The notes under the pieces were generated by a model. The model was not told the DNA's origin. It ran no database searches and saw only the letters and a program-made list of their open reading frames with translations. Positions 1-62,657 of a DNA stretch of 64,000 nt are shown piece after piece; position 1 is the stretch's first letter; each line of letters begins with the position of its first letter. The DNA comes from Haplodiscus bocki (Eukaryota), in assembly GCA_965655095.1 (NCBI GenBank), contig OZ296649.1, forward strand, positions 135,718,001-135,782,000. The letters are read 5' to 3'. The position numbers were made by a program, and so were the translations under genes.

Positions 1-929
1 CCTCCTCCAGCTGGTGGTAGGGCAGGTTTTGCCCTCAGAATTCCCGCTTGGGGAGGCGCTGCCGACAGAATTGCTGCAGCGGGAAGCGGGGGAGGTGCTG
101 GCGATAGAATTCCTGTTGAGGGAGGCGGGGGAGGTGCTGCCGGCAGAACTCCTGCTGGGGGAGGCGGTGGAGGTGCTGCCGTCAGAATTCCCGCTGGGGG
201 AGGCGGTGGAGGTGCTGCCGTCAGAATTCCCGCTGGGGGAGGCGCTGCCGACAGAATTCCTGCTGCGGGAGGCGGGGGAGGTACTGCCGACAGAACTCCT
301 GCTGAGGGAGGCGGGGGAGGTGCTGCCGGCAGAATTCCCGCTGGGGGAGGCGCTGCCGACAGAATTCCTGCTGCGGGAGGAGGGGGAGGTGCTGCCGATA
401 GAATTCCTACTGAGGGAGGCCGGGGAGGTGCTGCCGATAGAATTCCTACTGAGGGAGGCCGGGGAGGTGCTGCCGACAGAACTCCTGCTGGGGGAGGTGG
501 TGGAGGTGCTGCCGACGGAACTGCTGGGGGAGGCGCTGCCGATAGAATTCCTGTTGAGGGAGGCAGGGGAGGTGCTGTCGACAGAATTCCTGCTGCGGGA
601 GGCGGGGGAGGTACTGCCGACAGAACTCCTGCTGAGGGAGGCGGTGGAGGTGCTGCCGTCAGAATTCCCGCTGGGGGAGGCGCTGCCGACAGAATTCCTG
701 CTGCGGGAGGAGGGGGAGGTGCTGCCGATAGAATTCCTACTGAGGGAGGCCGGGGAGGTGCTGCCGACAGAACTCCTGCTGGGGGAGGTGGTGGAGGTGC
801 TGCCGACGGAACTGCTGGGGGAGGCGCTGCCGATAGAATTCCTGTTGAGGGAGGCAGGGGAGGTGCTGTCGACAGAACTCTTGCTGGGGGAGGCGAGGGA
901 GATGCCATCCAAGAAATTTTAGACATCAT
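1..929 (-). CDS. Proline-rich tandem-repeat exon (units like [13 protein letters not shown])
   Basis: Acceptor cttacttcag|ATG at 930/929, phase 0 matching the donor at 5215; 309 open codons to the window edge; 27-39-bp repeat units. Confidence 0.8.
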   Translation of the reverse strand, partial: MMSKISWMASPSPPPARVLSTAPPLPPSTGILSAAPPPAVPSAAPPPPPPAGVLSAAPPRPPSVGILSAAPPPPPAAGILSAAPPPAGILTAAPPPPPSAGVLSAVPPPPPAAGILSTAPPLPPSTGILSAAPPPAVPSAAPPPPPPAGVLSAAPPRPPSVGILSAAPPRPPSVGILSAAPPPPPAAGILSAAPPPAGILPAAPPPPPSAGVLSAVPPPPPAAGILSAAPPPAGILTAAPPPPPPAGILTAAPPPPPPAGVLPAAPPPPPSTGILSPAPPPLPAAAILSAAPPQAGILRAKPALPPAGG

Positions 930-3900
930 CTGAAGTAAGTAGTGATTTAAATTGAAAGAATAATCCAATAGCGAAAAGATGTTAGAAACGTTGCTCTAGA
1001 CTTTCACACATTTTTTAGATAACTTCAAAAAAATTGATCTTGATTCGTTTTCAGTACTGAGAAAGACTGAGCTAACACTAATTTCGCCTATCTCATTTTT
1101 TTTATTCTCGAAGAAGACAGAATTATCCTAATTTTCGGTCTAATGGCAATCAGACTTCTATTTGGAGTTCAATAACTTTCGGGGGATCAATTACTGAACA
1201 CATTTCCATCTTTGCCAAATAGGCCCCTGAATATCGAAGCACAAGAAATTAAGAGATTTGCCGATATAAAATTTTCGAATGAAACTTTTTAGATCATCAA
1301 ACGCGGATTAATTTTTGCGGGAAACCATTTTGAAACGTGACCTAAAAGATCAATCCTTTCAAATTTTGAACAGAAAATATTTGAGGAAGAGCACACAGGA
1401 ATATTTTGCACATGGATCAATCAACATATAATAGGTTTTCGATTGAGACACAGGTAAGCTAAACGGAAAGGCTGCAATTTATATTGCGAAAAAGACTTCG
1501 CAAATACAAAATGCCAATTATCAGTCCATACTGTAATGGTACTAAAAGAAGCACTTTTGAAGCACGTAACTCCGAAACACTCTGCATGTAGCTTTTGCAT
1601 AACCGTTGTATTTTCCTCAAGCTTCCACGCTCTTGCCGTCACTTTCAAAAAACAGGCGCCTAACGGGGCCCAAACATCGAATTGGAACGAAAGCCTACTT
1701 ACTATTTTCCGCCACATGTTTTCAAATATGTAAGAAAAATTATTCATTCAGTGGGTTCGTTTTTTCGGTATAATTTTGCCAACTCTTTTTATTAGAAATT
1801 GAATCTCGGCATTAATGTTAGGACAAAAATTCTCAAGCAGTAGGTCCGGTCCGGGTCCGAATCTTTGGCGTGCCAGATATTGTTATGATTTCACTGAAAA
1901 TTGTCAGACATTGCAATGGTTCCCATGGCACAAAGGGTAGGACAACAGGGTACTCAAGCATTAGGTACGAGTTCGAACCGCAGCATGTGTATCTAGTTTT
2001 TAATTTATTTGTAAGATAGTGAAAGTTGAGGATTGTTTTTTTTCTACTATCAAAAATATTATATTTCGCCGATTTTGAGAAAGTACTCAATAAAAAAATG
2101 CTGAATCTAATGGACACTTTTTTCTTTTATTATTTTCAAGAGAGAACGAATTTTCTCCTTTTTTCTCTTATTGTTTTTTCCGGCATATTACACAGGAAAG
2201 TACTGCCAAACACAGGCAATAACTCACAAACAACAAAAGGTCCGTTCGACGAAAATTTCCGTTGCTGTGAGATAAAAATGTTTCGCGGTTTCTCATAGTT
2301 TTTCGATACTAGAAACTTGCAGACACACCAAAAGGGACCCCTCACGAAATTTTTCATGCAGACGAAAAGCTTTTCACATCTTTTTGTGATACCCTCCTGT
2401 ATGGTTTACCAAAAGTTTCCCACCTGACAAATGCGCAGAGCTAGAAACTTCCATAAACACAAGAAACTTCCAGAAATAAAAAAAGGGCTCCCTTACCTAT
2501 CTTTCGGTACTTTGATATCGGGAGACAAACAGTCTTAGAGGTTTTTTCGTGATACACTTCCATGGTTTACCGAGGCATGCTTTACCGAGGTTTTCGCGTT
2601 AGACAGATGAGGAATGTCGACTTTGACCTGATCTCAGCTCGTTTTAGTTTCAATCTAGAAATTTTCCCAAAAGAAAAAAGGCAATTCAGAAGTGCAGTTT
2701 TTCCTTTCCCAGGATTGTTTATTACATATGCGGCGTCACCCTAGATAGGTAGCCCCAACTCAGAACGCACCACATCTTTTCAAAACTGGTTTTATGTTTC
2801 CTGAAACTGTTGTACAAATTAGATTCTTTTCGATCCACACTCTTTTTTCCCCCATATACTTTAGGGTTTTTCTGTTTCCCGAAAAAGATTCACTTTTTCC
2901 ATATGTATGAATCAACTGAACTTGTTCTAATCTTTAAAAAAATGGGCAAAAAAGTAGTTGGTAACTTTCAACTATAACAAAATTATATGTTCATTTTGTA
3001 AAATGAACACCATTCGAAAAAAATGAGCTGTTTTTCCAGAAAAGATTCCTCCAGAACATGTATATTGTTTCTTTATCTATGCTTCAAACACCAAAAAAAA
3101 ATCAAGAAAAACTTTCCTTCAAAACGACCGACTGACATTTTCCATGAAGGCCACAACCCTTAACTTTTCATTTGTTGAAAATCCTTGTTTTTCGGAATAC
3201 TTCGTTTCAAAAAGCTGGCATATGAAACAAGGATCAATTCTGCTAAAATATATTCGACAGGCAATTTTCTAAAACGGAATTCAAACCTATATTTCTTCAA
3301 ACCTCCCAGTTGACTTTCATCCGTCAACGTCTCACTGAACTAATGTCACCTTGTAAAAAAGTGTTGAGAAAATATTTTGCTATTCGACCTTTTCAAGAGA
3401 AACCCGTATGAACGAAATTAGCAAGAACTGTTAATGTATGATGAACTTTGATATTCAAACTAATTTTACTTCCAAACTACTTGCCAGAACCAATCCATCA
3501 ATGTCTGAATCGACAACTTCCTCAGAGCCAAACATCTTTCAACAAAATCTTCCATACGGGTTCTTGCCTCGAAACCTTGGAGGGTGGGATTAACCAAAAA
3601 GGCTTGGTGGATTGATTTTTCTCGCTAGTGACACTAAAACTTTGCTCAAAACTACCGGCTACGTTTCTGCAATCAATGTCTCACTCGACGATTTTCTACT
3701 TTTAACTTGGTACTTCACTGTACAATATTGCGTTTCGTTCCTCATAATGGAAACCTCATAATGTCCAAAAATGCATGTTTGCTTGAATCGTCTTTATAAC
3801 CAGACTCGATTCGTTTCGAAACAACCTTCTCAATATCTGCTATCATGGTTTCAACCGACAATTTTTTTTTCGGCACAACATCGTTCAAGGAAAACGTTCA

Positions 3901-9900: not shown

Positions 9901-12900
9901 CAATTGGAACACGGGTGGTGGCGCGGGTGCACTAGGGAGCGCTGCGTGCATCATTTTAGGTGAAGCCATATTAGGAGCCGAAAAAAGCATAGATGCCGCA
10001 ACATTTACAGTTGGCCCAGTGAAGTCACTAGCTGTAGACGTGAATTTCGCTGAAACGTCTTCAGTTGGCATTGAGAAGGCGATACCTTTCGCACTCGGCA
10101 TCCGTTGGTCAGTTATAGCAGTTGGAGACATTGAAGCGTTGACTGACAAAGGCGAAGTACTTCTTTCAGTTGGGTCCCACGCTGCACGACGAATCCTTCC
10201 TGAAGTTGTAAAAAATCATGAAGATCTTCAAAAGATTCAATGATGGCATGTACACACCGAGTAATGAAAAGTGCATTTTAAAACAGTTTTCCAGAGCCGT
10301 TATTTAGAATTCTGCCCATTTTAATACGAGACAGTGTTTCTGGATTTGACAAATTATTTATGCATTTAAAAATTCTATTCATTTTAGTATACATCCGCGA
10401 GGTGATTTTAGACGGTAATGTAGACCACTTTTGGAATGAAATTATGATTTTTAGAAACGGTTATAAGGTAGAATTTAAATTAGCAATTTTTAAGCTAAAA
10501 TTTTAGTTGCCTCTATACTCGGGAGAACTCACACTGAAAAGCGCACAAAGTCCCACTTTAATCTACATACAATTTAATCCACGCTGGCTTTTTTCTACCA
10601 AAAGTAAAACAGGTTTAACCGGACTGGTTTACCAGTAAAAAAAACAACTTGTAGTTTTGATTAGTAATGTCTCAACTCTAACCTAAATTTTGATTCAAAA
10701 ATGATGATCAAATAATCACCCGGAAAATTCACAGCTCTTGCCGATCTGCTAGGAGACAACTTGAAACTTGTTCCAATTTCAGGTCCAACGTAGCTGTCTT
10801 TCTGACCCATTCCAACCATTACACCTAAAACAATTTTACTGTGCAAAATCGAGATTTCTTGCATCTTTCCATGCTGAAAACATAGACTTTAGCGTTGAAA
10901 GTAAAGAAGAGCCAACGACCCCCCTTGAAAAATCTTCCTGACCAATCTCGAAACGTCACCAAGTTTTTCTATGATGAGATACTCCTTCTAAGGAGGTAAA
11001 GTTTCTGAACAGGATTCGGCAAACATCACCTTATATCCAGGAAAACTATTCTGATTTATTGTTGGATTTGAGCTATTCTCATTTGTCATTAGCCGAACTG
11101 TTTTGGCAACCTGACTATTAAATTGCGGGCTGCTAGTTGATACTTGATGTTGCAGTTTAATTCCGCCTGCAGTTGATTAGTTCAGATTTCATCTTATATC
11201 GCAAACGTCTTATAAATCTATCCGAGCCAGTTCAAACTTTAAATCCAATCGGTAACTTTGTTAGTGCGAAGCTGATGACAAACGCCTGCTTTTGAGGTTT
11301 TTTTTAGATATTAAAGCCTTTTCTTTCTGTCAGGTCCAGGTAATATTCATTGCCGTTCGGAGGTTGACCGTTTACACAAGAACACTAGAGTCTGACGTCA
11401 AGAAATGCAAGTTTTGGACAGGATAGAAAAAGTGGGCATAAATCACTTCCAATTAGTGGCTTGACTGTTACCAGTTGTTCTGCAACAGTTACAGAGAGGC
11501 GAAGCTGCGCTTTCCATCTGCTTGCAACGAAGGTCAAAAATGAACAGACTAATTAATTACCCAACCACGAAAACAGCTCATTTTCGTGAACTTTTCCAAA
11601 TAGCAAAGTGTACAGAAATGTTTGAGCAGAAAATGAAATGGAAAATGGCGGTGTGCAGAATTGTTGATTTTCTACAATAAAGCGTTTTTGATTAGCAGCC
11701 ACTTATCCTTGCCGCAGAGTCTTTTTGGAATAATCTCTTCACTGGCCGCAAGAAAAAAATTACCAATTTGAAATGATTTTGCCAGGTATCTCCACACAAA
11801 TCAACAATGTTGTCCCATCATCCTAGCCACGTCATTGAAGGAAAAAGTCCTTTCAGAACATCTTCGTAAAATTTTCGACAGTGGATAGCATATCAGTCAC
11901 GTATACAGCAAACTTGTCAGATAAATTGTGTCTTCCTTATATTTCATTGACCACTTGACCCAAAGTCAGATGATCAGGAAGCTTTTTGGAGAATAGACTG
12001 TCGAGCACAACGCAAAATGGCCTGAACCGTCGGATGATATTCACAACATATTGATCCCTCTCGTTGCAAATTTCGTAGAGTTTTATGCAAAAAAAAACAT
12101 TTCTTTTGACTGCAATCCTCTATCGTAGCGGTAAGTTGTTTCTGGAATGAATTTGCAACGAGGGTTAGGTATGCTCCATGCAACTGCTCGGGTCTCGGGA
12201 AAGTCCCTCCTCTGACAATTTTTTTCAAGGAAATTTTGCATTTTAGTTGCTCTTTTGAGTCGTCCATTTAACGCCAAAAGTATTGCAAAAAAATCTTTCA
12301 GACAAGTTGATCTTTCGTTTTGGTTCGATAAAAATGTTGCGACTGAAACTTGTCGCAAACCAGGCAAATAGGATTTTCAGCTTCCGTTATCTTCTTCACA
12401 AGCTGGTTTGACCTTTTATGACCTCTATTGTTCTCCCTTTTAAAGATAATGGTTTATGGGAATACAGTTTGCATGGTTTTGTACCTCCATAATTGTAAAT
12501 ATCGTTCAGGTACTCTCAATAACAGTCCGCGGGTGTAACTACTGTGGGAATCTTCTGCGCTGCAAGATGAAATTGTTCGGATTCTGCAATTTATGCTGTC
12601 GATTTTCAAATATTATTTGAATTCCTTTAGTAATTTGACCGTTCATTCAGGTACTTCTTTAAAAATAAATTCACAGCAGTCTGAACAATTTCTATATACT
12701 TTCGTTGTTCGCGAGCTTTAATTTTACCTGCAAATGATGCGTTAAATCTTGAGAAATATTTGCTTATTCAATTTCTTTGTTGCCTCATTGTCTGACTCTT
12801 TTGTTGAAACTTTAAACTATCGCATATCGTTTTCTGAAATCCTACTGGCTGATTAAATAAATTTATGCTAATACAATAACATTTGACCGAACTTTTGCTG

Positions 12901-27900: not shown

Positions 27901-30900
27901 CCCTTCACTTTGCGGAATTTTACTCTTGATAGCTCACCAAGAAAAAGTCCGAGAGCTGAAAGGTAAATAGCATTCAGGCTAACCACTATACAAGCTAACG
28001 CGTAGCTTTGACGTCTTTAGAGTGCGCCTAATGTTCATTTTCGACAAAAAAAATTTGTGGCATTACTTACTTAAGACACAAAAGAAAGGCAAAATAGCAC
28101 TGCAAAGCACTGTAAGCAACTCAGTCTAACAATTTCAAGTAGATGGACGTAGATCGAAAGTCTGGGAAGCCGATGAAAAGACAGAAAATGACATTTTACC
28201 GCAGCCAACTGAATGAACCATAGAAAAAATCGAATTTTTCGCAAACAACGCGCTATCACTCGTCAAACACTTCTAAATTGGGAGCCGCAAACGAAATAGT
28301 GAGAATAAAACACTCTTTGGAAGAACTATGCCCCAGATTGAAAGCAAAACCGGTGGAAGGAAGGAAGGAAGCTGACGGAGGAAGGAAGCCGGAAGACCAA
28401 ACGTTCGAAAAGATAAATTTTCCTTTTTTGGCAAAAATTGGCCGAAAAACATTTCTGACATAATTACCACAGGCCATTCGAACGAATGCTATTAGACTGA
28501 TTAGTGCTAAGACATGAGCAACACCGAGCTTACTGTGAAGACGGCAAAAAAATTAGCCTTTGCCCTCAAAAATACGAAAACTGAAGTTTTTTCGCCAAGA
28601 ACTCAGCGAAATGATTTCCACTGCCGAAAACTTGGAATGAGAGATCGTGAATCCGGCGCAATGCTTATCCAAAAACTAGACAAAGTCGATCAATAGGTGC
28701 CGAGATATTTAGAGGAAGTGGGATGAAACGCAGAGGGATGTTGCGGACGATATAAATGAAATCATTGTTAGGTATCTTTCTGCGAATAGGCTTCGATCCG
28801 TTCGCCTAAAAGCATAGCTCTAAAGTGCTTTGAGGTAGACTCGCGAAGATCACAAGACACACCGGAGATCAACATTGCACGTGTTAGAAGCTTCATTGCA
28901 AGCATAGCTGATTCGTAGCTAAAATCTGTCGCCGAAAATCAAATGAACACTTGGCGAAGAAGTAGATCTTTCTGGCATCGATTGCAATGAATTGCCAAAG
29001 GAAGAGAGGCAGTTTCTCACAAAACAGGCAGTCTAGCATTGTCCTCTGGCTACACTTTACAATGCCACACTGACCTACAGAAGACAATCAGAGGACCGAG
29101 AGAAAAAATGAACATTCACAGAAGTTTCCGACAATTTTTTCTGAAACTTTCGGCAAAAATTCGTCTTTAGCACGCGCTCAAAATCAATCGGAGCTTCACG
29201 AAACTTTTTACAACTGAATTAACGTTGATCTTTCTCACCATTTAAAAATCGGTCAAGTTACATAAAATCTCCCAAAATAAGATAAAAAAGGTCGACTTTG
29301 ACGATCTTTTGCCAAAAAATGGCGAAAAACACGAAATATTTTAAGGGACCTGTGACATTCTCAATGGCTTCAGAAGAGACAAGATGGTTTCATTGTGAGG
29401 AAAACAAATGAAGCCATCTCCAGGTCTTCAGTAAGGTAAAAGACCGAGAAACATGGAATCTTCCGCTTATTCGCATGATAGTGTCCGCTGGATTAACGCG
29501 GAAAAGAAAACAACGAAGAATCTCCTGAGGCACCATGAGGTCTACTTGACCTCTGACAATCAATCAACTGAGTAAATTAGGTTTTTGCACGTCCGCCAGG
29601 CGGTGGTAAAGCCGGAGAACATGCCCTTTTCCATCTTTTTCTTTTCAAAATTCGACGGCATCAAGACAGGTTGATTTCGCACCGATTCAACTAACATAGG
29701 CACACATCGTATGTGAATGGTTCTGCTGCTAGTCAAATTCGACAATTTGCCCAAACAATTTTCGACGTTTTCAGTTTAATTTCGCTTATTATCTCTCGGC
29801 GAGAAATATTCGGAGGTGCAAAATAAGGGAAATGGTCATTTGCAACCTTGCCGTACAGATTTTCAAAACTAGAACGCCTCAGCCAATATGCTCTGAGATG
29901 AAACGTTCAAAATCAAGAAATGCCGAGGGCACTTCATGTCACTAAGTGGAAAAATTCTAAAATGGTAAAATTTGTCTGAAAAAGGAGAAAAACGGCACTA
30001 GCGACTGAATAATTTTCCTTTCCATATATAAAATACGGAGGCATAAAATAAAAAAGCGCGAATATTACTCAACAGGATTATTGAAAAAGGCACGATCAAT
30101 ACAAGCCACTGAAGGTACCTCCTCTGATTTTTCTCCTTATGTATTTGTTTGGATTAAATGACTTCCGGCGTGATGCCCGAACGCGACATCAATTTGCCAA
30201 ACGGGATTTGTTGTCTCCTGGGACATCAGAGATGATTACGATATACCGTTAACCTCCAACGACGAAAACAAGAGATGTTTATTCCCAAATTTTTCATACC
30301 CGAAAACCGGGAAAATACCGAATGATCAAGACCATAAAGGCTACCGAATGCGATCTCGTTCTCAAGATTACTCGATTACAAAATACTTGATTTTTTAATA
30401 TCGATCAATCCACTGTATCCATTTTTATTATTTCCCAGCATTTTGCCAGTTTTTCGGGTTCATTTTCAAGCAAAGTTTTTGATCGAATGTTTGAATATAT
30501 TTTCTGAATGTTCGAATAAGCTTTCAATACATTTCTTTCATCTCTAGCGTGGCGAATATTCTAAAGTGATTATAGTTCGTTGTATTCAAATGGTGACAAT
30601 TAATGAATGATAATCCGTGCCTGGCAGCCAGTTGATGAACCATTTGTCCTTCGGTCACTTGCAGGTCAGGACAGGAAATTACAGTGGATATTTCTTGACC
30701 GTTTAGTTCCGCTCTCAGAATTACTTGTCTACAGTGTCTGACAAGTCCATACACCACAACACGCTCTCCATCAAACAAAACTGATAAGTTAGCAGGAGCC
30801 TGCAAAGAAGAACGATAAAATACTTAGAGAAATTTATTCATTAGTTCTTCCCTTTCACGCTCTAGGGTGTAGGGTGCTAGGCAATGCGGAAACATTTGAA

Positions 30901-33900
30901 AAAAATGCAGTTTTTCGAAGGTCAGAATCAATAGTCAACGGAGATAAAGCTCGATGTCACAATAAAACAAACAGAAAGCAAATAAAATAATTGATCAAAT
31001 TTTTTGCCCTTAATATACTTTTGTAGTTTACATGTCATTTTTTGTAGTTTACAAATCTCTGGAAAAGCTAAGCATGTAAGCATGTTTAACATCAACTTCT
31101 GAAACTCCGACTTCATGTTCTTTAAGAACTTTGAAAGATTTAAATGTTAAAATACTTAGCTTCGTTGTTCCAACATCTCTGCTTTAGAAGTCGCAGAGCT
31201 AGAACCCTAATACGCGTGTTGCTAGAACACGAAAACTAACGGTACCTCCCATTTTGAACGTAAACATATTTTTTTTTGTGAAAATAACGGGAAGAAATCA
31301 GCAGGTACCTGAATCAAACCAGAGCCATCCAGAGGATTATAAACTGGTCGATTTTCTTTTTCATCATGGAGCACCCACTGAACAGAAACTTTATTCAGAG
31401 CAAGTTGGAAGCACTTTTTGAATTGCATCTTAATTTTTTCCATCCATGACGACTTGTGAGAAGTATCGAAAAACTCGAAGAAACCACCAGCTTTGTTAGC
31501 GATAAGCCTCATCGTGTGTTTGTCGCAAGAACTAGAAACTCCGTTGGTAAACAACCGAAATTGGCTATCTTCTGCGCCTTCGAACACTCTTAGTATCGAG
31601 CTTTGCACGTTTTGTGTCAAATGACCGTCGCTGAATAGCATCAAAACTGTTTTCAAGTTGACTTCCTTTTTCGATCGCAGCAAAAGGTTGGAACCATCTC
31701 CTTTTCCTTGGAAGAGGGCTGATAACATTCCAAGAGGTTTCCCCAATTCGGTCCCGCCCAGCGCTTCAAAATTGGACGCAAGTTTGCCCAGAGTCGCAAT
31801 TGCCGACTTCTTTGAAGTTTCATCCGCTTTCAGAGACTTGTCAAAAACTTCGCGGTAATTAGTTCCGAAAACTATGACGTTGAAAAGTTGGTTTTCTTTC
31901 AAGTTCATTATTGTCAAACACGCTAATTGTATTGCAGTGAAAAAAGCACGGTCATGTTTCATTGAGTTTGAGAGATCTACGAGAAGTATAATCTGATTGG
32001 TTGAAAGACTCGTCTTCGATTGGCTGGCTTCAAACTGAGGGTAGAAAGACAGCATGACGGCTTCGTCGTCAGAATTATCAGGCAATCGCTCGACCCACAT
32101 TCTGGGTTTGTTAACTTCTTCTAAGTGGATCAGCAACTCGAGTCCGTCTTTTCCAAGGCCTTGGTCATTTTCTGATGCTCCATTCGGAAGGGCACATACC
32201 GCTTGAGTTTCGGTACGCTGAAAACATAGAGCTTTTGAAAAGATTAAATTAGGGGTATACTCTCAACTTACTGAGTAAAAAGCATGTATCAATGGAGCCA
32301 ACACCTTCATACCAGTAAACAGACTTTCAAGTTTGAAACTGTTTGAAAACCGGTCGTTATTTAAACTCGTTTTAATTTCTCAGACTTTCGTTGCCTTCAT
32401 TTAGACTTAGTTAATAATCCAAGTGACTTCAAAAAGATTCAAGTGCACTTGGTGCTAAACGTTGAATTCTCGAAATGGTTGAGTGCCCGCACTAAAATCA
32501 ATAAACAAACCCAAGCTACCAAACCATGTGATAAATGAAATCTCAAAGACTATTTTGTTTAACCCATTATACATTTATTTCTCCACGTAACATGCCCTAG
32601 TATTCCATACACTTGATTTATGTGATGCCTTACAGTTTTCTGCTTTCTTTGCCTATGAGTGCACTATTCTTCTTGAAATCTTGTTACATCAAGGATCGAA
32701 ATTTACAACTCTTAGTGCTTAAATAAGTAAGAACTTTTTAAAGTCTATGAAATCGGGCATACCTTAATTTTGAGTTGCGGATGCGTCCTTGAAGTGAGCT
32801 GTTTGATTGCCGATCCCATATTTGCCTGCAGTTCAAATGTAAACTTATGTCGCACAGACTTATCTTCAGCATTTCCGGCGTTAACGGAAACCGAATCCAA
32901 CTTCGTTTGCAACTTCATTTCTTCTAAAGATTTGATACTCCAGGGTGCCACGGCTGCGGGCAACGAAAACTTGACTTGAGACCCTTCAACTTGCAATTCT
33001 GTCACATACGTTATTTTTATAAGCACCGTCGCTTGCGGGGGCAAATTGCCCACTGCGACCGAAAACACATTTGGGGTTTCCTTTTCCTCTTCCATCAAAT
33101 AAGCTCCATGACCTTCCTCAATTGCTTTCTTGTACTCCTTCCGAGCCGCAACTTTTTCTTTGACTTCGCCCACAATGTGTTTTCCGTTGATGTAGGCTTC
33201 GAACCCGACAACGGTGCAAAACTCGTCCAATGGAAAAACGTATTTAGCTTCGATGTTAGAAGACGTGCTATTGTTTTTGTAGACTTGCATCACGACGACG
33301 CTGGCAACAAGGTCAACCATTTTCGCCCGGATATGAACTGCCTGTAGAGGGATCGAATCCCGTAAACCGCTCTGAGGTACAAGTCCTGCTTCGCTCATTG
33401 GAGGCGTCAGAGATGAAAGATGCTCCAATTCTGAAATAGCTTCCTATTGGTCAAATTCGAAAGCTCTCCAAGGGGTCGAAACGTCGCGCTTTTTGGATGA
33501 AAGTTGGACTAGACAAAATTTTGATGAAACCTACAACTTTCAATTGACTCAATTGAATACAATTATTTGCCGACTCCAAATAATGACTGGCAAAATTTGA
33601 TCCAGAGAATTCAGTCAAATAAATTTTTTCAAGTTTGCTAATGGGTATATAAATTCACTAGACCGGTGTGAAATTGGAAAGCCAATTGAGAACTAACTTC
33701 TTTCATGAAAACTATTCTATTTGTTGTTCAATGCCATTAAATCAGCAACCAGCTAACATCAAATTCTTGTTTCTTGCAAAAGTTTAACTCAATAGAAAGC
33801 TATACAAGGAACTAAACTCACTCAAATCTTCAGCCTTCCGCAACTCTTCATTCCCACTTTCTTTCTTCCTGGTACTGTCACTGTCATCCAATAGTAACTT

Positions 33901-36900
33901 TTGCCCAACTTTTCCTTTCGCTCGCTTTTCCCCAATTTTCCCAGTATCATCTTTCAGCTTGAGTTGTACCAGGTACTTAATGCTGATCTGACTTGTATCA
34001 TAAACTACAACTTCTTGCCCGGATTCAAACTCTTTGGAGCCCAGGGCACTGACGACACTGTTGTACCCGTCAGGTGCTTTCACGAAGTCAATTTTCAGGT
34101 CATCAGCACTGTACTCCTTGCCGCAAGCTACGTCACAAACTAGCAAGTAGCGGAACTCGTTTTGGGCACAAGAAGTGTATTTTAAACTGGTTGTGCATTG
34201 GGGTGAAAAGTAAACGCCTGCTCCCAATTTGCCAAAGTCTGTCAGGTTTATTCCGAATTCGTTGGTTACTATGTTTGGCAGCAAAAGACCCCTACAAGTT
34301 AAAGGTTTGATTTGATGGATTTATTCTTACAATGAGATTTAATAAAATTAGTATACTGTAATGACATTGAAACAAAGATATAGGTGCAACAGATTCCGGG
34401 AAACATTTTCCGACACTTCCGCATGATAACAACGTTTTCCACACATTCTTCTCCCTTTTACCACTTTGCTGAAAATTGGCCCTTGTGGATCTTGACTATA
34501 GAAACACTAGAACTCTTATCTTTCTTTTTTTAACCGCAGATCTAAAAATCATATTGAATGAAGAAACATCTTACGTGTCACAGTCTTATGTTGTAGATAG
34601 AATACGGTGAACATGACAATATCCTGAGAAAGAATCGATTTTGAAGTCTCGCAAAAACTGGACCCAAAACTTGATATGAGATAACACCGACTCCAATAGG
34701 CTTAAGTAGAACTTCATATGATTTGAATGCCCAAATTTCTAGATGCAGGACTTCGAATATGACAAATAACGTCAAAATAGCAGAAAAAGGACCGTTTTTC
34801 ATGAATTCTTTGACATTAAAACTGCGATGAAACAATTTTACACAATCAAAACTTCGCAAGTAAAACTTTGGGGTCTACAAGATAAGTCAATGATAAACTC
34901 AGTTGGTTCGAAGGCCTATGTGTCAAGATAGAGGTCTTCGGAAATGAAAAAGTAACGGCCAAAAAAACTGCGATTTCCATAAGTCTTCCGGGAAAATCTC
35001 ATCGCAGCCAAAAATAACTATATGATAAATTAGAGTCTCTCCGCTATGTGAACACAAAACATGCTAGGGGAGCAGATGCTAGAATAGAGAAATTAAAGTT
35101 GATAAAGTATTTCAAAATAGGCAAAATAAGCTCGATTTTCAAAATTCTTTTCCAAAAAAAACTATTAAAGAGATTTTGGATCACAATGAAAAGGCAGTAG
35201 GTGACAAAATGGGGTCTCCTTGTTAAATCTGTGCAAAAATCAAGTGACTTGGAGACTTATATACCAGGATGCATGACTTAAAATTGATAAGATACTTCCA
35301 AAAATAGCCAAAAATCCCGATTTTCAAGTTATTATCGCAAAAAATCTGTCGCAAAAAAAACAAGACCGCAACCAAAAATTATGCGAACTATTGGAGTCTG
35401 TTTATTCTCCTTAGCTAAAATTCAGGTGACTTCGAAATAGCTCCTCCAATAAGACGAAGCATCGTCAAAACAAAATTTAAAAGAAGACATGTTTTGGTCA
35501 ATATGATCATCATGTCGAAAAAAGTGGACAGAGGAATATTCATGTAAGAAATAAATAAAACTACGGTAGAGTTCTCCTAGAACAATACGAACTACTGTAA
35601 AAACGTAGCATCAAATGAAGATGATCATACTATTTCCGGGAAATGAACAGTGGGTTCTTCTCCACAATAAAAAGGGCCTCTAAGGTCACAAGAATAGACT
35701 CCATTGAAAACCAATGAAAGAACCACGTGCGTCCATTTACTTTAGATCTTGTTCACCCACGATTAAGAAAATGATACAAGCGGGAGAGCCGTTGCGACCA
35801 TCCTGTCATCCTGGTTCCAAGATGCTGCTCCATCAGTCCCAAATACTGGGCACTGCACCCAGGACATGTAGTTTCATGAACCACTTTCAATCTCAAACTC
35901 ATTGGAACAGGCGCTTTTGAACTTGATAGCATCATCTGATGTTTTTTGAGTTGTGGGAATGACGGTAAAAAGCCCGCAACTTTCCTCTGACTCTAAAATC
36001 TTGACAAAACAATCTGTGTGCGAGCCACGATTGTCGAGAGAGAAACCCCTAGCGCTTTTCCGCAATCAGATGTCGATTTAGGTTTCTCGAGGGAATCACC
36101 ATAGCACTTGTACATAGAAGCTTCAATTAGAGAGTTGTAAAATTCTGGTGGCCATTCATTGGTCTACAAAAGCTTTTTCAAAACTTCGAGTTTTTAATGA
36201 AACAGTACCTAGGACGACCAAAATTGGAGAGACCAAAGGGCCTTGCTGGCGGTAAGTACCAAAATTTACCGTACTGTTTTTTTCCGAAAGGCAATCGAGC
36301 TAGTCATTATATTCAAATAGCTCAACAGCTTTGTTGATTGTTTCCTTCAATGGGATCATTGTCAAGGGTGAATTCATGTCGAGTGAAGCAAAATTTTCTC
36401 CACGACGGAGTGCAAGATCACGTAATTGTTTCGCATTTGTTTTTGTTCACTAATGAATGCGAGATGGCTTCAATTTCTCAGCAATTCGTGCAAGTTGATT
36501 GCCAAGCTTCTCATATGAAGGTCTCGGCATGGAGACGGTAGGCCTCAAGGGGTTGATTTTGTACTTTAGCGAGTCCGTAAAGATGTACAAGCTGTCCTCC
36601 AATGGATCGAGCAGCTTCGATAAATTCTGTTTCTCTTTATATTTAGAAGTTGGATGGTCACTCGATCAATTCAGGCCAAAAAATGGTTCCATGCGCTAGC
36701 GCGGCTTTTCACCTAAATATTTTTGGATTGTATGACCTCAAGAAATTTATCAAGCTTTCCGTTGTAGTTTTTCCTTGTTAGTAATAAAAAATGAACATCC
36801 TCTATCAGAGGAAAATGCTACCAAGTCATCACGTTTCGGAAAAGCAGAAGCAGTGAGCACCATGCGGTCGACCTTGAGCTTCGTGCAATTCCGATTGTTT

Positions 36901-39900
36901 CGAATAGCCAACGTTTTTACGTCATTCTTCCATTTGTCGATCCCACCAGAACGTTGTTGCTGCGTCACCAAGTGGAATTTTTGTTTGAAAGAGCCGCGAG
37001 TCGAAGGCTGTCATAACCGGAAGTTTCGTGCTGAAAGACAGTAGATTCAATATACTCTGCGGTAGTTTTACGCCGTCATCGCAAACACCGGTTCTTTCAT
37101 TAGTCATTAATTTGTAAATGTCTTTCAAGTTGAAGCGAGTTTCTTCATTTCGGATTCAATTTCAACTTTCGTCCACTTGATAGCACTAGCCTGTGTCTTC
37201 GCACGTAGAAAGAGACGCCGAGTACCATGACAAGTTCTAAAGTTCCGCCACAACTTGTCGGAGAGGCAAAAGTATCTCAGGGTCTTCGAGCTTCTCCGCG
37301 GTTTTGTGGGTCACCATTCGAAGCAATTTCAGGTAAAATTGTTCCACAAAATCTCCACTGAATACTCCGTTGCTAGGTCATTGGAACTTGAAGAAATCTT
37401 GGCAAAATATTAGCCAAAAATAGCTCTGTTTTCAAGTTTCTTTCCGAAAATCTGATTTTCGGACCTCTACCAAAAAACAGCATTTGGTAGATTCGAGCTC
37501 CGTTGTAACATTTTTGCGAAAAATTTGACCAAATGGCGAAGAAGTATCAAGCTCCAAACGAAAAATTTCTCAAAAGAAAATGAAGTTAATACATTAGACG
37601 TAGCTTTCTACAGGCCAGATGTCAAAATGCGTGGTCTTCCGAGGATGATTGGCCAGTAAATGCAAGGAAACGATATACACGGTACACAACTACGTAACAC
37701 AACTAAGCAATCAATGTTGACATCAAAGTCGATTCACATCAAATCCACATTTTCAAGTCTGGGAAAATTGTCGGACAAGACCTGGTTCCAATACTATCTT
37801 CACCGTCGCGTTGGATAATAAAAATGACCAAAATTGTTATAAAAATTATTGCAATTTTATACAACACTTGTGGAAAAAATCAGTTGACTGCTTATTCCTC
37901 ATTTTTTAAACAATTTTTGGAAGCATTTGAAACCCGGCATTCAACGAAAAAAGGATACTTTGTCCCCACAAATCTTTCATCAGTATCATACCACAGAGGT
38001 GAAGCTGTGTTTTGCAACAGTGGCGCAAACGGAATACATGTAAGAAACGCTTTAAACTTCATTCGGTTGCTATTTTCAAGAAAATACTGATTCTCAGGCG
38101 AAAATTGCAAAGCTAGCAAGTGATGCGACTGTGGCGCGATAGGTCCAAGGTTCCCTTCTCTTTGATCAAAATCTAGGAACTTATGCTAGTTTTGAACGGA
38201 TCGGAAGAAAAGTAAGCAGAAGACTTATGTAACACTTGGTTCCGCAAGTTTAACCATACCTTGATAGAATTCCGATAAGATTGGACACGTTGGTACCGTG
38301 AAACAGTCTTCTCACGTTGCCAATATTGCTTTTGAATTCTGCCAATTCACTGGCTTTGGTAACTTGGAACAACCCAACTATTTCTCCATCCAGATCTTCT
38401 GGCATCAATAACGACTCAATACTGTCACTTTCAACACTCACAGGCACAATCATAGAGTCCAATGCTTCGTACATGGCTCTCACGGCTGGCTTCGTATTCC
38501 AGTTAGTTACTTCTCCGAATGATACCATGTCCTTGATTACCTGTAAACAAATAAATTTTGTATTGTAAGGACAAACTAAGCGTAACTTCGCGACACATGT
38601 TGACTAGAAACACCGTACTATCAAAGATTGCGATATTTTTCAAAAAATATAACAGAAATAAGTAAAACAAAACCTCAAAGATCCTGAAAGTCAACTGGTA
38701 CCAAGCTTGGAGACGAGATTCACACTTTTGGAATTACGAGACCATCTGTCAATCAAACATTTACTCGCAAATGCAATTGCAACAAGTTCCTGCCATATTG
38801 ACTCAAACTCATCACTCAATTAGTTAATTCTTCCTTACATTTACGGACGGTTTTGGTCACTTTTGAGCTCATTCAAAAATTAGCATCTTTCAGAGCGTGA
38901 AATTAAACAATCGATAGCTAAATGTCGTTTAGAAAAAGGACGTTTTTCAGAGTTAATATCGCAGAAACAGACTTTCTGATCACGTCAGAAAATGCAAGTG
39001 TTGTATGAGAAAAAATCTCGGTTACCCGTCATGAAAGTCAAACTGAAATTTCATTCCACAATATGTAAAACTGGACTATTCAGTGCAGACAACCCAAAAC
39101 TAACTTGACACATATCCAGTTTTTGAGCAATCCTCTGCAACGAAAGATCATCTTCGGGCCTTTTGTGAGGCAGGCAGTCGAAAAACTTGCGAGTCAGATC
39201 CGAACATTTGAAAGTCATCAGAACGAGGTCTCGCATTTCATCCTTTAATATTTCAACTTTTTTCTCGTTAGTTCCTGAATTTTCCATTTTTCCCAACTTT
39301 TTCGTTTCGGCAGCTGTCGATAATTGCTTCAATCTTCTGATCTCCAGAAGATAGCCAATGGCTTCTTCAATTGTGTCACGGTTACAAGGTTCGATTGAGA
39401 AGTTTTTCAGGTCGTCAAAAGAGCTTCTAGCTTCCGAGTAAAGTGTTTGAATCAAATCAACAACTTCGTCATCTAATTTGGCATCTGTAGAGTTGGAATC
39501 CAGTATAATCGCCTAAAGAAAAGATAAGTATGCAGATGAAAAAAAACTTAATTTGCAGTGTGTTGATTAAACAAAACAAGGACTGATAGTAAATAATTTT
39601 CAGCATCTTTCTATCAGTGTAAAGGTATTTCAGACTAAAAATTGAAATTGCGAAAAATCCCAACTCAGAGTTTTGCATACAAGGCAGTCCCCAGTCCTCA
39701 TCCACTATTTTATGGAACTTTGATTTTGTTCCAATTTTACCGACACAAATATTTAGCATCGCTTGATAGCTTCCGTAATATAAAAGTAACAGGCCAAGAA
39801 TGGTCGGAGTCGGTGGCACTTGGATGGCTCAAAATATTCATAGGAAGGAGCTGATTTTGATGTTTGAAAAAAAATGTACTTTTGATATATTTTATGGTTT

Positions 39901-40669
39901 AAAAAATGAGAAAACATAGCTTATGCTGGGATTTCAACCCGCTAGTCAATTCGGTAGATTATAAAAGGGAGTTATCCTTTTTTAAAAGTTCAATTTTTTT
40001 TTCGAAAATAGGTAGCTTTTTGTACGGTAGTTTTCGGTATAAAAAATATATAGCCTTAACCGGGGTTCGAATACGAGACTCGTGGCTTCGGAGCCCTTTT
40101 GTCCTACCCAGAGGTGCATACAAATTGTAACAAATGTAAAAAGGCAAAAATGCAACTATGTCCGAATTGGATCAGTTCGATGTGAGGTATGTTATCTCAA
40201 AAAAAGTCACTACAATAGTCGGCCTCTTCACTGAAAATAAAGCGCCGACTACAAACTTGCAAATGAATTTTTCAAATCAGCAAGATTCAACACTAACTTT
40301 TTTCAATTTGGGCGATCCAGGAAACTTTGGATTTAATATTTTCTCTCTCAGCCGCTGATCCACCTCAGCAACCTTCATCAAACATCGATCTTTATCACCG
40401 CTTTCTAAGCTGCTAACACACTTCGCATAACACTCGACTGCGATTGTTGAGTCATTGCATAAATATAATTCAACTGGAGCATCTTCCTCTGAATCAAATT
40501 CTTCCTTGCTTTTCTCACTGATTTCAGACGGGAGCCATTTGAGAACAATAAAAGGAGTATCTATCTCAAAATTTGGATCAGCCGATGAATCGGAAAAGTT
40601 AGTTCGAAGCGGTACTGATACCTTTCCGTTCAATTGTATCAACTCCACAACCGCCAAATTATCTTCTGT
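1..40669 (-). CDS. PARP4: PARP4/vault PARP-like multi-exon gene with extra ubiquitin-like, actin-fragment and Pro-rich modules (5' exons not resolved; 3' end beyond position 1)
   Basis: Predicted exons: 40669-40298, 39512-39105, 38540-38260, 34291-33822, 33430-32763, 32217-31309, 30799-30621, 26900-26738, 23686-23582, 22893-22741, 21859-21690, 19104-18997, 17670-17445, 15494-15326, 13306-13154, 10824-10720, 10199-9882, 5471-5215, 929-<1. All junctions are GT-AG (one GC-AG) with matching phases. PARP+VIT+vWA order and motifs ([44 protein letters not shown]) match PARP4. Confidence 0.88.
1922..1995 (+). mobile_element. tRNA-like SINE head (related copy at ~40050-40115, minus strand)
   Basis: gggtaggacaa...gttcgaacc shared by both copies; B-box-like motif but no intact cloverleaf. 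Confidence 0.45.
3050..5000 (-). repeat. Degenerate ~175-bp tandem array
   Basis: Recurrent minus-strand motif gagac(c/a)ttga..ga..t.cag(c/t)c.gtagtttt near 3135, 3310, 3490, 3660, 3835, 4010, 4185, 4365, 4540, 4720. Confidence 0.65.
5215..10199 (-). CDS. Ser/Pro-rich low-complexity exons (10199-9882, 5471-5215)
   Basis: Phase-consistent (1,1,0) GT-AG exons; includes PSAPAPPP and a basic KKKKTR cluster. Confidence 0.72.
10720..13306 (-). CDS. Actin N-terminal fragment (phosphate-1 loop plus DNase I-binding loop), exons 13306-13154 and 10824-10720
   Basis: [15 protein letters not shown]...[11 protein letters not shown]|[13 protein letters not shown]; actin similarity stops after G55. Confidence 0.9.
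11000..12900 (-). mobile_element. Highly decayed Penelope-like or other non-LTR retroelement fragment
   Basis: Broken frames with KLAFLDVR (LPFLDV-like) and [12 protein letters not shown] (FxFN-like) RT remnants. Confidence 0.35.
13781..13821 (+). ncRNA. Minimal type I hammerhead ribozyme (Penelope-associated type)
   Basis: uggc-CUGAAGA-u-[GAUAGU guc AUUAUC]-GAAA-CAUG-UU-gucg: core boxes, stem II, palindromic stem III, short stem I. Confidence 0.65.
13977..14150 (+). mobile_element. tRNA-derived SINE
   Basis: A-box-like tgacgcagtcagtagagc and B-box ggttcgagcc; body tgatcaaaatctaggaa...tgaacggat shared with the copy at 38093-38240. Confidence 0.65.
15326..17670 (-). CDS. Internal ubiquitin-like domain (exons 17670-17445 and 15494-15326)
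   Basis: [33 protein letters not shown]|[44 protein letters not shown]; 34/76 identities to ubiquitin by manual alignment; the second exon is absent from the ORF track. Confidence 0.92.
18997..22893 (-). CDS. Unassigned, probably helical exons of the same gene (22893-22741, 21859-21690, 19104-18997)
   Basis: Open frames with canonical splice sites whose phases (0,0,2,2) link the PARP4 exons to the Ubl exon; the 19104-18997 exon has a weak acceptor and could be skipped without a frameshift. Confidence 0.6.
19742..21498. mobile_element. Non-autonomous foldback DNA transposon with a nested TIR element at ~19940-20750
   Basis: Termini built from inverted ccaaaatacc subrepeats; gttgaatc direct repeat at 19734-19741 and 21499-21506 (candidate TSD); inner ~200-bp TIRs with gacaaaaccgccgatttt subrepeats. 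Confidence 0.7.
22953..23486. mobile_element. MITE
   Basis: Terminal inverted agctgagtcat...atgactcagct plus subterminal inverted similarity. Confidence 0.55.
23582..30799 (-). CDS. PARP4 post-vWA conserved exons (30799-30621, 26900-26738, 23686-23582)
   Basis: [18 protein letters not shown]...MVHQLAAR|AVIRDWE...[22 protein letters not shown]|DETF...[12 protein letters not shown], collinear with PARP4. Confidence 0.88.
24850..25360 (+). mobile_element. Possible decayed LINE 3' fragment
   Basis: Stop-interrupted frame KLEQFLQ...ENF...LFNLP loosely resembles LINE ORF2 C-termini. Confidence 0.25.
31309..32217 (-). CDS. vWA domain exon
   Basis: MIDAS DxSxS (VDLSNSM), [26 protein letters not shown]. 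Confidence 0.93.
32763..33430 (-). CDS. VIT domain exon
   Basis: [27 protein letters not shown]...[11 protein letters not shown]...[20 protein letters not shown]...[18 protein letters not shown]...[11 protein letters not shown]. Confidence 0.95.
33822..38540 (-). CDS. PARP catalytic (ADP-ribosyltransferase) domain, exons 38540-38260 and 34291-33822
   Basis: RRLFHGT (His), ILSR|[13 protein letters not shown] (Tyr), [22 protein letters not shown] (Glu): the H-Y-E triad appears intact. Confidence 0.93.
35570..37360 (-). mobile_element. Decayed Penelope-like retroelement (RT plus GIY-YIG endonuclease)
   Basis: LYGLAKV...[15 protein letters not shown] (PLE RT N-terminal motif), [17 protein letters not shown]...HLGTRM (GIY-YIG), [14 protein letters not shown]; many stops and frameshifts, RT core appears deleted. 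Confidence 0.8.
38093..38240 (+). mobile_element. tRNA-derived SINE, second copy
   Basis: Similarity to 13977-14150. Confidence 0.55.
39105..40669 (-). CDS. PARP4 exons: WGR-like and helical regulatory region
   Basis: LAVVELIQ...PFIV...GSPKLKK|[28 protein letters not shown]...IAQKLDMCQ resembles the PARP4 segment before the catalytic domain; AG acceptors and GTTAGT donors. Confidence 0.8.
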
Positions 40670-52953: not shown

Positions 52954-53420
52954 TTATTAAGGAGGTATTTATTGAAATAAAAAATTCTTTTCAATAGTAA
53001 ATTGAAATAATTAAAATGAAATACTAGTCTTCGAAAACTGTCTGGTTTCTTTTATTATTTTCTGATTAGGTTGATGTTATCAATTACATACATATGCCCT
53101 GAACTTTAAAAAACTTGTTTCTTTTAACTGAGGTCATGAAAGACCATCCTGTTATTTTGACATCTCTTTTTTATCTCTTTAATTATACATTTATTGGACC
53201 AGAAGTTGAATAGTTTATCACTACCATATAATGCATCCGACTCACATCCGATTAAGATATAATTATCGACTTTGTCTGTTTTAATATGTTTGAATCCATA
53301 AATCTTTTTGTTTTCGGGAATAACTTCGTTTTTATTATACGATTTACACTCCATCATATCAACTATTCTCTCAAACCGTCTTTCTACAACCATTTTATCA
53401 TCTTCTTTCATCAAAATTTG

Positions 53421-56400: not shown

Positions 56401-57030
56401 AATATAAAGAAGGATGATCATCGTATTTGTCTAATATTTTGTCCATGAACTTGGCTAATTCATTACTATCTTCAAAAAATCTATTAGTATCGATCTCTTC
56501 TTCGTCACCTAGAATAAAATACCCATTCGTAAAAAACCCATTTCTCAAATTTTCCATATCTTCTTTGAGAGTGTTTACTGGTAATTCATTGTATTCAATC
56601 TTGTTTTCTGCTAATTCGAGGAATAAACCGAGATCTATCTCATTATCTTCTTTTTTCAACAAATTCTGTAAAATCAAACGGGTTTCCTAGAGAATGTTTT
56701 TAATTCTCTTTTTTAATTGTTTAATTTTTAGTTTAACTTCATCTTTTACCTCTTCAATGTGCGAAATTATTTTTAATACGTCTATTTTATTTCTAATATC
56801 GGTTTTTGATTCAATTCACTCATTAAGTCGCGAAGAAAGTTCCCAAAATTTTCGATCTTTCTGTCTCCTTCTTCGTATGGTTTTTTTAATTCTATTGATT
56901 TGAGAGATCTCATGTTTTTTTTATTATTTTCATCTATATCAATTGCTAACATTTTAATTTTTTTATTCACTACAGCTCTAGCTGTTATTTCTTTTCTCAG
57001 TTGCTTGTTAAATGAAGAATTGTGTTCCAT
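53421..57030 (-). pseudogene. Protein-primed family B DNA polymerase (pPolB), frameshifted
   Basis: Exo I FVFDLET, Exo II AHNSSGFD, Exo III YKLDVLCL, YDFNSLYPS, KIGISVYCGNIRKD, YTDTDS, LAPKIKY; the N-terminal part may be the terminal-protein region. Confidence 0.93.
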
Positions 57031-57089
57031 TTATAAGGAATAAATTTATTGAATTAAAAATATCTATTCAATAAAACATAAAAAACAAA

Positions 57090-57388
57090 ATGGCTAATGA
57101 AACTTGAACCGTGTGTAATATTGAAAAACATATCAACAATTTTTACAAAAATTATTCAGATTGTAAAGAATGTAATATCAAAAGAGGTGTAAAACGTTAA
57201 TATGAAAATATTGATAAAAAATCAATTCAACAAAAAATATATTACGGAAAAAATAGAGATAAACTATTACAGAAACAAAATGATTACAGAAAGAAAAGAA
57301 ACACAGATTATAAAGAAATACTTAGATCCTATGTTGATTTACAAAATAAAATTGAAAGCATTGGAAGAAAATTTGTCAAGGAATGACT
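57090..57388 (+). pseudogene. Small Cys-containing protein upstream of the integrase
   Basis: VCNIEKHINNFYKNYSDCKECNIKRG followed by a basic/helical region, with stops. Confidence 0.45.
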
Positions 57389-59479: not shown

Positions 59480-59554
59480 TTATGTAGCAAAAAACATGTA
59501 TACGTACAATTATATGAGTACTTTCATAGAAATATATGCAGATTTATACTTAGC

Positions 59555-60402: not shown

Positions 60403-60535
60403 TTAGAAGAATGTGAATGTGTTTGTCTACAGAAAATGTGAATGAGATCTACTCTTATACGTGTAATTATAGTTTTATTCATACTTTTATAAGAGTAAAT
60501 CCAGGAATACTTGTGTGAATAAGAGTCATAACTTC

Positions 60536-61388: not shown

Positions 61389-61528
61389 TTAATAAACAGA
61401 ACAGTTCACAATAAACAGATCAGAACAGTTCACATCGAACAGAACAGTTCAAAGTGAACACAGCAATTCACATTGAACAGAACAGTTCTATGTTCTAGGT
61501 TGAAATATTTTTATTTTTATGTTCATAT

Positions 61529-62064: not shown

Positions 62065-62078
62065 TTATACAACATAAT

Positions 62079-62475: not shown

Positions 62476-62657
62476 TTATTACACAAATAAGCAGAATTAC
62501 TCGTATATATGTATGTATACACAGATATAAATACTGAAGTAATTGCATGTATACACGTTTATTATCACTCGTGTAAATATAAACATACATAAATACTCAT
62601 ATAATTGTATGAATACACAAATATAATAACTCATATAATTGTATGTATAATGTTAGT

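Follow-up and report, generated by a model that had tools for sequence, protein, structure and literature searches.

An in-frame ubiquitin and an actin fragment in the tail of the vault PARP (PARP4) gene of Haplodiscus bocki, candidate baits in host defence

The functions of the vault and of its ADP-ribosyltransferase PARP4 have been obscure for decades, and the only prior evolutionary clue was the positive selection under which the disordered tail of mammalian PARP4 evolves (PMC4038475). In PARP4, the MINT domain serves as the anchor inside vaults (PMC12280208). Perina et al. (2014, DNA Repair 23:4, PMC4245714) recorded 14-3-3, actin or actin-binding and ubiquitin-related domains on PARP4-like (clade 5) proteins and read these appended domains as links to signalling, cytoskeleton and ubiquitination; they list the domains and do not propose a bait function. 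Here we describe a PARP4 gene on the minus strand of a 64,000-nucleotide stretch of Haplodiscus bocki DNA (assembly GCA_965655095.1, contig OZ296649.1, positions 135,718,001-135,782,000; this whole stretch is called the window), in which a ubiquitin and an actin fragment with the DNase-binding loop (D-loop) lie in frame in the tail. The closest described proteins are the PARP4-like proteins of Physella acuta, Dreissena polymorpha and Dysidea avara, in which a PARP-VIT-vWA core is likewise followed by ubiquitin and an N-terminal actin fragment. In the models from Dysidea (sponge), Dreissena (bivalve), Macrostomum (flatworm) and Convolutriloba (acoel) the D-loop comes 55-90 residues after the ubiquitin, thus in the same order and with similar spacing as here. 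The Haplodiscus bocki gene differs from these models in a Tyr in place of Pro after the GG of ubiquitin, an insertion in the actin fragment, two exons of this lineage termed E2 and E3, and a long polyproline array. With vertebrate PARP4 it shares the H-Y-E residues, VIT, vWA, the VDxLPYxxW motif and a long, disordered, proline-rich tail, whereas the vertebrate tails sampled are without ubiquitin or actin pieces (that of the lungfish has a synaptobrevin piece) and end in a MINT domain, which our searches, given below, did not find in Haplodiscus bocki.

According to Pfam, the minus strand from about 40.7 kb to the start of the window carries one multi-exon eukaryotic gene with a PARP-VIT-vWA core, in which the PARP catalytic domain is split over two open reading frames (ORFs; 38250-38528 and 33784-34284) and VIT and vWA are located on minus-strand ORFs downstream of it. 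Orthologue tblastn placed core exons at 38555-38259, 34293-33946, 33431-32763, 32229-31333, 30805-30620, 26902-26739 and 23689-23594. For comparison we used a distant relative, the closest database match (74% identical in the vWA exon), whose 118-kb public contig was walked in three steps. Blocks shared with this contig in tblastx mark a conserved N-terminal region (40250-40663, minus strand like all features of the gene) that matches no Pfam family; it is followed by a helical/regulatory PARP exon at 39099-39512 (63% identity to the relative, a weak PARP_reg match with E 0.017, and orthologue tblastn). A BRCT domain was not matched by Pfam in the ORF 40277-40657, and orthologue N-termini matched nothing upstream by tblastn. 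The first catalytic part (38259-38555; Pfam PARP E 2e-5, tblastn with 13 orthologues) holds the His and the second (33937-34302; Pfam PARP E 5e-10, tblastn) the Tyr and Glu of the H-Y-E triad, readable in the translations as LFHGT, GVYFS and QEVVVY. Next come the VIT exon (32757-33437; Pfam VIT E 7e-36, 67-94% identity to the relative), the vWA exon (31306-32229; Pfam VWA E 2e-10), a conserved post-vWA exon (30620-30805; 45-56% identity in orthologue tblastn, 85% to the relative) and the last core exon (26739-26926; splice reading and tblastn), which ends with FVAVEKRDK followed by gt. With the vWA exon as query, 826 relatives were found among 1.8 billion representative proteins, and the named full-length proteins among the top matches were annotated as PARP4. 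The exon was seen once in the 1.5-Gb genome, that is, PARP4 is single copy. Judged from its sequence, the window gene is the only PARP4 of the animal and a true orthologue.

The preliminary description of this DNA had drawn a phase-consistent, stop-free chain of minus-strand exons running from the PARP4 core through a ubiquitin and an actin fragment into proline-rich exons. As far as the actin fragment this chain was confirmed by Pfam, tblastn, GT-AG joins and phases: read base by base, all introns are GT-AG, the phases agree at every junction, and the exons from 23686 to 10720 translate into 360 residues without a stop. The tail opens with the exon DETF... (23686-23582) carrying the family-wide VDxLPYxxW motif, which was found as a motif cluster of 22 tails and is kept in the relative. 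Two lineage-specific exons follow, the helical-looking E2 (22893-22741, phase 0 to 0) and E3 (21859-21690, phase 0 to 2), supported by their splice sites and by 66% and 75% identity to the relative, respectively. Ubiquitin is encoded by two exons. The first (17670-17445; acceptor and donor present, kept in the relative) encodes a linker and residues ~1-33, with a Pfam match to ubiquitin positions 1-30 (E 2.5e-4); the second (15494-15326; Pfam E 5e-9) encodes residues 34-76 ending in LRLRGG and 14 linker residues. Pfam found these two halves on the minus-strand ORFs 17409-17720 and 15309-15482. The actin fragment is likewise split, into an exon for residues ~8-41 with an insertion, ending IGRPRHQ G and then gt (13306-13154; aligned with the animal's own actin and seven PARP4 fragments, kept in the relative), and an exon for the D-loop and divergent sequence after it (10824-10720; splice reading and D-loop codon comparison with the relative). 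The translation thus has the order VDxLPYxxW motif, E2 and E3, a 76-residue ubiquitin, a 14-residue linker and an actin fragment with D-loop.

The exon joins were inferred from splice sites, phase and comparison. DNA contigs from two samples, which carry no information on splicing, agree with the assembly and are identical in ubiquitin exon 2 and both actin exons, sample 2 covering actin exon 1 only from 13159. A second donor, GTATGT, sits right after the ubiquitin GG at 15363, upstream of the chosen donor GTGAGA; since the residues beyond GG are conserved (YVDST and YIDPT in this species and the relative), GTGAGA is favoured. Repeats were observed in the introns between the ubiquitin and actin exons: the segments 11300-11500, 13900-14100 and 15500-16300 are high-copy, with contig depths of hundreds to thousands and many loose ends.

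For the proline-rich exons the earlier chain stands in part. Enumeration gives a phase-compatible route from 10720 through a candidate Ser/Ala/Pro-rich exon (10199-9875) to a polyproline exon starting at 929. The candidate exon comes from splice and phase enumeration, being compatible with both neighbours, and not from conservation; the polyproline exon (1-929, extending 255 bases past the window start) was read from its translation as a 39-base tandem array of ~23 copies, and the relative also has polyproline downstream of its actin exons. The link from actin exon 2 to the polyproline exon is only plausible, since many alternative donors exist and splice-site choice alone makes the connection. 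Long PPPPP runs with short hydrophobic spacers next to an actin-related element resemble formin FH1 and WASP, but a formin or WASP reading was dropped as Pfam detected no FH2, WH2 or VCA in the polyproline exon or its continuation. Pfam had no match at all in these two stretches, nor in E2, E3 or the Ser/Pro-rich candidate.

By sequence the first module is ubiquitin proper, a complete 76-residue beta-grasp that would be unable to build chains. The top PDB matches of ubiquitin exon 2 are ubiquitin itself, over residues 34-76 (E 7e-11). Of the seven lysines only K27 is kept; LRLRGG is intact and followed by Tyr, and the module is internal to the PARP4 frame without a free C-terminus. Natural ubiquitin fusions (ubiquitin-ribosomal protein, polyubiquitin) also join an LRLRGG ubiquitin head-to-tail to a downstream polypeptide; in contrast to these, the PARP4 ubiquitin lies inside a protein of clearly more than 1,400 residues and is left with one of seven lysines, and most PARP4 orthologues have a Pro after GG or G76S, which block normal processing. 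In an alignment of 17 PARP4 ubiquitins, from which all residue counts were taken, L8, K27 and G75 are invariant, Q40, R42, H68 and V70 almost invariant, and I, V or L occupies position 44. Of the 17, 15 lack K29, five keep K48 and seven have Arg in its place; Pro directly follows GG in nine, far above chance, and two carry G76S. The two that keep K29 are the same two with G76S, a hint that the integrity of the tail and the loss of lysines may be traded against each other. An AlphaFold model of the Dysidea ubiquitin-actin unit showed a confident ubiquitin fold (predicted local distance difference test ~90) with the linker and the actin fragment disordered, the alignment being shallow. Ubiquitin-Pro junctions resist deubiquitinases, and a non-removable ubiquitin is degraded via K29 and K48. 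The loss of K29 and K48 together with Pro after GG therefore fits a ubiquitin that stays attached, stable and still ubiquitin-like. The PARP4 copies look built for display and not for cleavage or conjugation.

The joined actin fragment is 53% identical to the conventional actin of the same genome over 62 residues (E 9e-17). It lies ~60 residues beyond the ubiquitin and spans actin residues ~8-55 only (~50 residues), far from the complete actin fold of ~375 residues, and its D-loop matches actin exactly over 20 residues. Actin exon 1 alone matched no PDB chain, the homology coming from the joined fragment and the orthologues. Across the PARP4 fragments of Nematostella, Hydra, Magallana, Mytilus, Macrostomum and this lineage the D-loop stretch is invariant while both flanks drift. 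The fragment has an intron at the Q41/G42 position of the intron in the animal's own actin gene, shifted by one base and with the same phase in the relative; this common position points to capture of genomic actin DNA and not to a retrocopy. The fragment is thus, on alignment and intron position, a descendant of an actin gene. A predicted complex of the Magallana PARP4 fragment and Haliotis actin yielded no verdict and is evidence neither way. The conventional actin gene of the genome (L015, G000:C2:47.6 Mb) has a phase-0 intron between Q41 and G42, and a separate intron-free actin paralogue (L012, G000:C6:42.5 Mb) has an altered D-loop (GRPRHVG...GQKTSYVG).

The contig of the relative is collinear with the window gene and carries on the same strand the core exons, E2, E3 and the ubiquitin and actin exon pairs, with polyproline sequence after them. 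Synonymous sites are saturated between the two (proportion of synonymous differences, pS, 0.7-0.85), so that the rate ratio dN/dS cannot be used and we give pS and the proportion of replacement differences (pN) instead. The pN of the ubiquitin and actin exons is 0.16-0.30, compared to 0.05-0.25 across the core exons and 0.14-0.25 in the PARP catalytic exons, and the 20 D-loop codons show ~10 synonymous and 0 replacement differences in a hand count. Purifying selection on the ubiquitin and actin exons is supported by these values. The per-domain comparison across relatives proposed in the preliminary description, done here as pN and pS against the one relative, has thus found replacement changes in these exons to be as rare as in catalytic exons. 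The claim that PARP4 contains in-frame pieces of ubiquitin and actin in the region from the vWA core to the C-terminus is supported by the exon chain, its conservation and this selection. Downstream of its polyproline stretch the relative has GLFG-type repeats (GGLFGSAAAQPASKSLFGS) on the same strand (L010:18069-18800, with one in-frame stop), and this tail ORF matches Nucleoporin_FG weakly in Pfam; no counterpart was found in the 20 kb downstream of the window.

Ubiquitin and actin modules are widespread on PARP4 proteins. In a local BLAST, 10 of the 150 best homologues carry ubiquitin and five an actin fragment, and a search with the Nematostella fragment gave actin matches in ~45 PARP4-type proteins, their sources being a ctenophore, six sponges, cnidarians, bivalves, a gastropod, hemichordates, crinoids, a tunicate, an acoel, a flatworm and Capsaspora. 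The range of the actin fragment on its own, with Capsaspora and ctenophores at one end and hemichordates and a tunicate at the other, marks it as ancient. The PARP4 of Physella (snail) has both modules, the precomputed Pfam list giving its domains and not their order; ubiquitin without actin was found in Biomphalaria, Plakobranchus, Sinanodonta and two Diplonema transcript assemblies. A second homologue search, with the Dysidea PARP4 ubiquitin region, was swamped by polyubiquitins and gained no PARP4. By these comparisons the gene has an old architecture, described in part before, and is not a one-off. Two points are thereby corrected: a chimera specific to this lineage is not borne out, the succession of ubiquitin and actin being present in the sponge, bivalve, flatworm and acoel models, and the architecture is in part on record already, in Perina et al. 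(2014, PMC4245714).

Other hub proteins are represented as well. A Pfam scan of the tails after vWA from 80 homologues detected 14-3-3 in 13 tails, ubiquitin in 10, Actin and Synaptobrevin in four each, HSP70, EF-hand, Ribosomal_60s and FG-nucleoporin in three each, and Slu7 and an Rpb1 repeat in one each; the wider pattern was drawn from ~125 homologues. The tails of Dictyostelium purpureum and Cavenderia combine 14-3-3 with heptads of the RNA polymerase II C-terminal domain (CTD) and the ribosomal P-stalk tail, and the sponge Sycon has seven exact YSPTSPS heptads. In one tail a synaptobrevin motif adjoins an EF-hand pair, and the lungfish tail also has a synaptobrevin motif. One oyster and one millipede tail have MGFGLFD after an acidic run, and Oscarella PARP4 has a WH2 match. 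In the PARP4-like protein of Dreissena polymorpha the tail joins Hsp70 and CTD heptads to ubiquitin and actin, and a near-exact histone H3 N-terminal tail (RRTKQTARKSTGGKAPR, P0251:1482-1498) directly follows the actin fragment. Throughout, the tails are variable in length and disordered. Judged from these matches, PARP4 tails in many lineages are mosaics of conserved hub-protein fragments.

Actin and ubiquitin were also met in other multidomain proteins. Amoebozoan proteins (e.g. from Balamuthia) combine NACHT/AAA and TPR with an actin match and look like STAND/NLR-type proteins (signal transduction ATPases with numerous domains/nucleotide-binding leucine-rich repeat proteins) into which a piece of actin is integrated; in another group, of protist proteins of ~1,100 residues, a Sec23/24 trunk or vWA is joined to actin (P0195, P0196, P0211, P0213, P0217, P0222 and P0223 cover both groups). 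Ubiquitin repeats occur with NACHT and ZU5 or with CARD in Amphiura, with a Death domain in Dysidea and with NB-ARC in Gossypium (P0318, P0361, P0339, P0359) and may be integrated baits or gene-model fusions.

A vault link had earlier been sought in an MVP gene and in an MVP-binding exon beyond position 1. The former is present on another chromosome (G000:C11:71.24 Mb) with four Vault repeats above cut-off. For the latter, tblastn, a profile of 40 MINT domains run on the six-frame translation of the 20 kb downstream (best E 0.06) and a genome-wide search gave nothing significant, although split exons or divergence could hide it. Weak MINT candidates at ~-3.5 kb and ~-4.9 kb beyond the window were inspected and not accepted. 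The PARP4 proteins of Nematostella and Hydra have a recognisable MINT at the C-terminus, with the actin fragment upstream of it.

Taken together, the comparisons indicate one open, conserved and selected frame, an ancient ubiquitin-actin unit and a family-wide habit of carrying hub fragments. We infer that the tail modules are displayed copies, or baits, of hub proteins. Ubiquitin and actin are proteins that pathogens target, and our favoured reading, to which we give a probability of about 40%, is that the modules may serve host defence, either trapping pathogen factors that recognise hubs or acting as a tripwire for them. Pathogen enzymes or toxins that recognise the tail and surface of ubiquitin, or the D-loop of actin, would be caught by the copy or would act on it. 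As a trap, the bait would bring the pathogen factor beside the ADP-ribosyltransferase and the vault; as a tripwire, an attack on the bait would change PARP4 itself. Defence is favoured because recognition epitopes and not working domains are kept, because the set of modules turns over and because the mammalian tail is positively selected. The decoy or tripwire idea of the preliminary description thus gains circumstantial support from the mosaic tails and the display-like ubiquitins. Plant NLRs with integrated domains and NLRP1/CARD8 may be seen as functional analogues, in that a responsive protein contains an integrated copy of a host protein or motif targeted by pathogens; the bait of NLRP1 is a disordered, fast-evolving region. 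The likeness would be functional only, since the PARP4 gene is without NLR, FIIND or CARD and its output would be the ADP-ribosyltransferase or the vault. We found no paper that proposes a bait or decoy role for PARP4, within an incomplete coverage of the literature.

Several points weigh against this reading. We know of no pathogen partner of PARP4 and of no effector acting on it. The modules are very old and change slowly, which sets them apart from many arms-race interfaces, but their parent proteins are nearly invariant themselves. In species with MINT, baits beside an anchor in the vault lumen fit cargo recruitment equally well, and for Haplodiscus bocki PARP4 no MINT was found in the 20 kb downstream or the genome. 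Tyr and not Pro follows GG here, so that ordinary host deubiquitinases might cut constitutively. Some public PARP4 models could contain gene-fusion errors, and the sequencing runs of the species are four DNA runs of one study, no RNA run having been found.

The main rival is recruitment of host partners, with the modules as adaptors for PARP4 substrates or vault cargo or as a tether of the vault to the actin cytoskeleton. Candidate partners would be ubiquitin-binding proteins, binders of the D-loop or the barbed-end cleft, and profilin, SH3 and WW proteins on the polyproline. The position of the actin fragment upstream of the vault-anchoring MINT in Nematostella and Hydra (PMC12280208), the interpretation as signalling, ubiquitination and cytoskeleton links by Perina et al. 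(2014, PMC4245714), the WH2 match of Oscarella and a long-term conservation that suits a housekeeping role all agree with it. However, the fragments kept (D-loop, P-stalk tail, CTD heptads, H3 tail) cannot fold or work as their parents do, and the set of modules differs between related lineages; we regard recruitment as possible but somewhat doubtful. A further use of ubiquitin would be as a processing site, at which host deubiquitinases cut after LRLRGG to give a core-ubiquitin protein and a tail starting with Tyr, the cut setting the fate of the tail. Tyr is a destabilising N-terminal residue in the N-degron pathway, the intact LRLRGG followed by Tyr is common to Haplodiscus bocki and the relative, and of the five lineages that lack Pro, four show Y, H, R or L in the position behind GG and one shows G. 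But with Pro after GG in nine of 17 copies and G76S in two, most are built not to be cut. The ubiquitin-fusion-degradation pathway acts on stably fused ubiquitin, and the near-universal loss of K29 suggests a stable fusion that evades it. In addition, the actin fragment downstream of the cut site is under purifying selection, and processing appears improbable.

It might also be that the frame does not represent one protein: the ubiquitin and actin exons could form a transcript of their own or be rarely used cassettes, the in-frame chain being a product of splice-site choice. The splice sites were picked by eye and phase, the donor GTATGT right after GG is a good one, and the run search returned DNA only. 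On the other hand, ubiquitin exon 1 begins mid-codon without a start codon and therefore cannot open a gene of its own; phases agree at all seven junctions, and the distant relative has the exons in the same order. Ubiquitin or actin is moreover found inside PARP4 in all Nematostella isoforms, in the Diplonema Trinity contigs and in one intron-free Logan contig, which together make a separate transcript very improbable. Finally, the modules could be functionless debris of exon shuffling tolerated in a disordered linker, as the disorder and variable length of the tail and the varying module content of lineages would suggest. Against such a neutral relic, these exons show as few replacement differences as the catalytic exons although synonymous sites are saturated, all aligned PARP4 fragments (five phyla and this lineage) have one and the same D-loop, and specific ubiquitin surfaces are kept while lysines are lost. 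We consider a relic very unlikely.

The defence reading can be extended to PARP4 tails throughout eukaryotes (Amoebozoa, Diplonema, Capsaspora, animals), which would then be integrated-decoy arrays displaying ubiquitin, D-loop, H3 tail, CTD heptads, P-stalk tail, 14-3-3, Hsp70, SNARE motif and calmodulin-like EF-hands, with PARP4 and the vault as an ancient effector trap or guard. This broad claim is tentative, and we are inclined to doubt it in this full form. If true, the Haplodiscus bocki gene would be the ubiquitin-plus-actin version of one lineage. To our knowledge, an immune logic of effector trap and guard has so far been known mainly from plant NLRs and NLRP1/CARD8. The tail of non-vertebrate PARP4 appears not as a random linker but as a selected mosaic of hub-protein pieces, and the textbook picture of PARP4 domains is corrected even if the bait reading fails. 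Nematostella, Hydra and oysters are tractable carriers of such modules, with which the question of who binds or cuts the baits becomes a concrete one.

Outside the PARP4 exons, a block of low GC content at 53400-63400 (0.27-0.30) contains several intron-free minus-strand ORFs of 100-290 residues. Two of them have the motifs NSSGFDS and DFNSLYPSA, similar to protein-primed DNA polymerase B, which suggests a Polinton/Maverick-type element, although Pfam gave no support for a polymerase in this block. An interspersed repeat is located at 1700-3000, with at least 78 matches at 63-82% identity across chromosomes.

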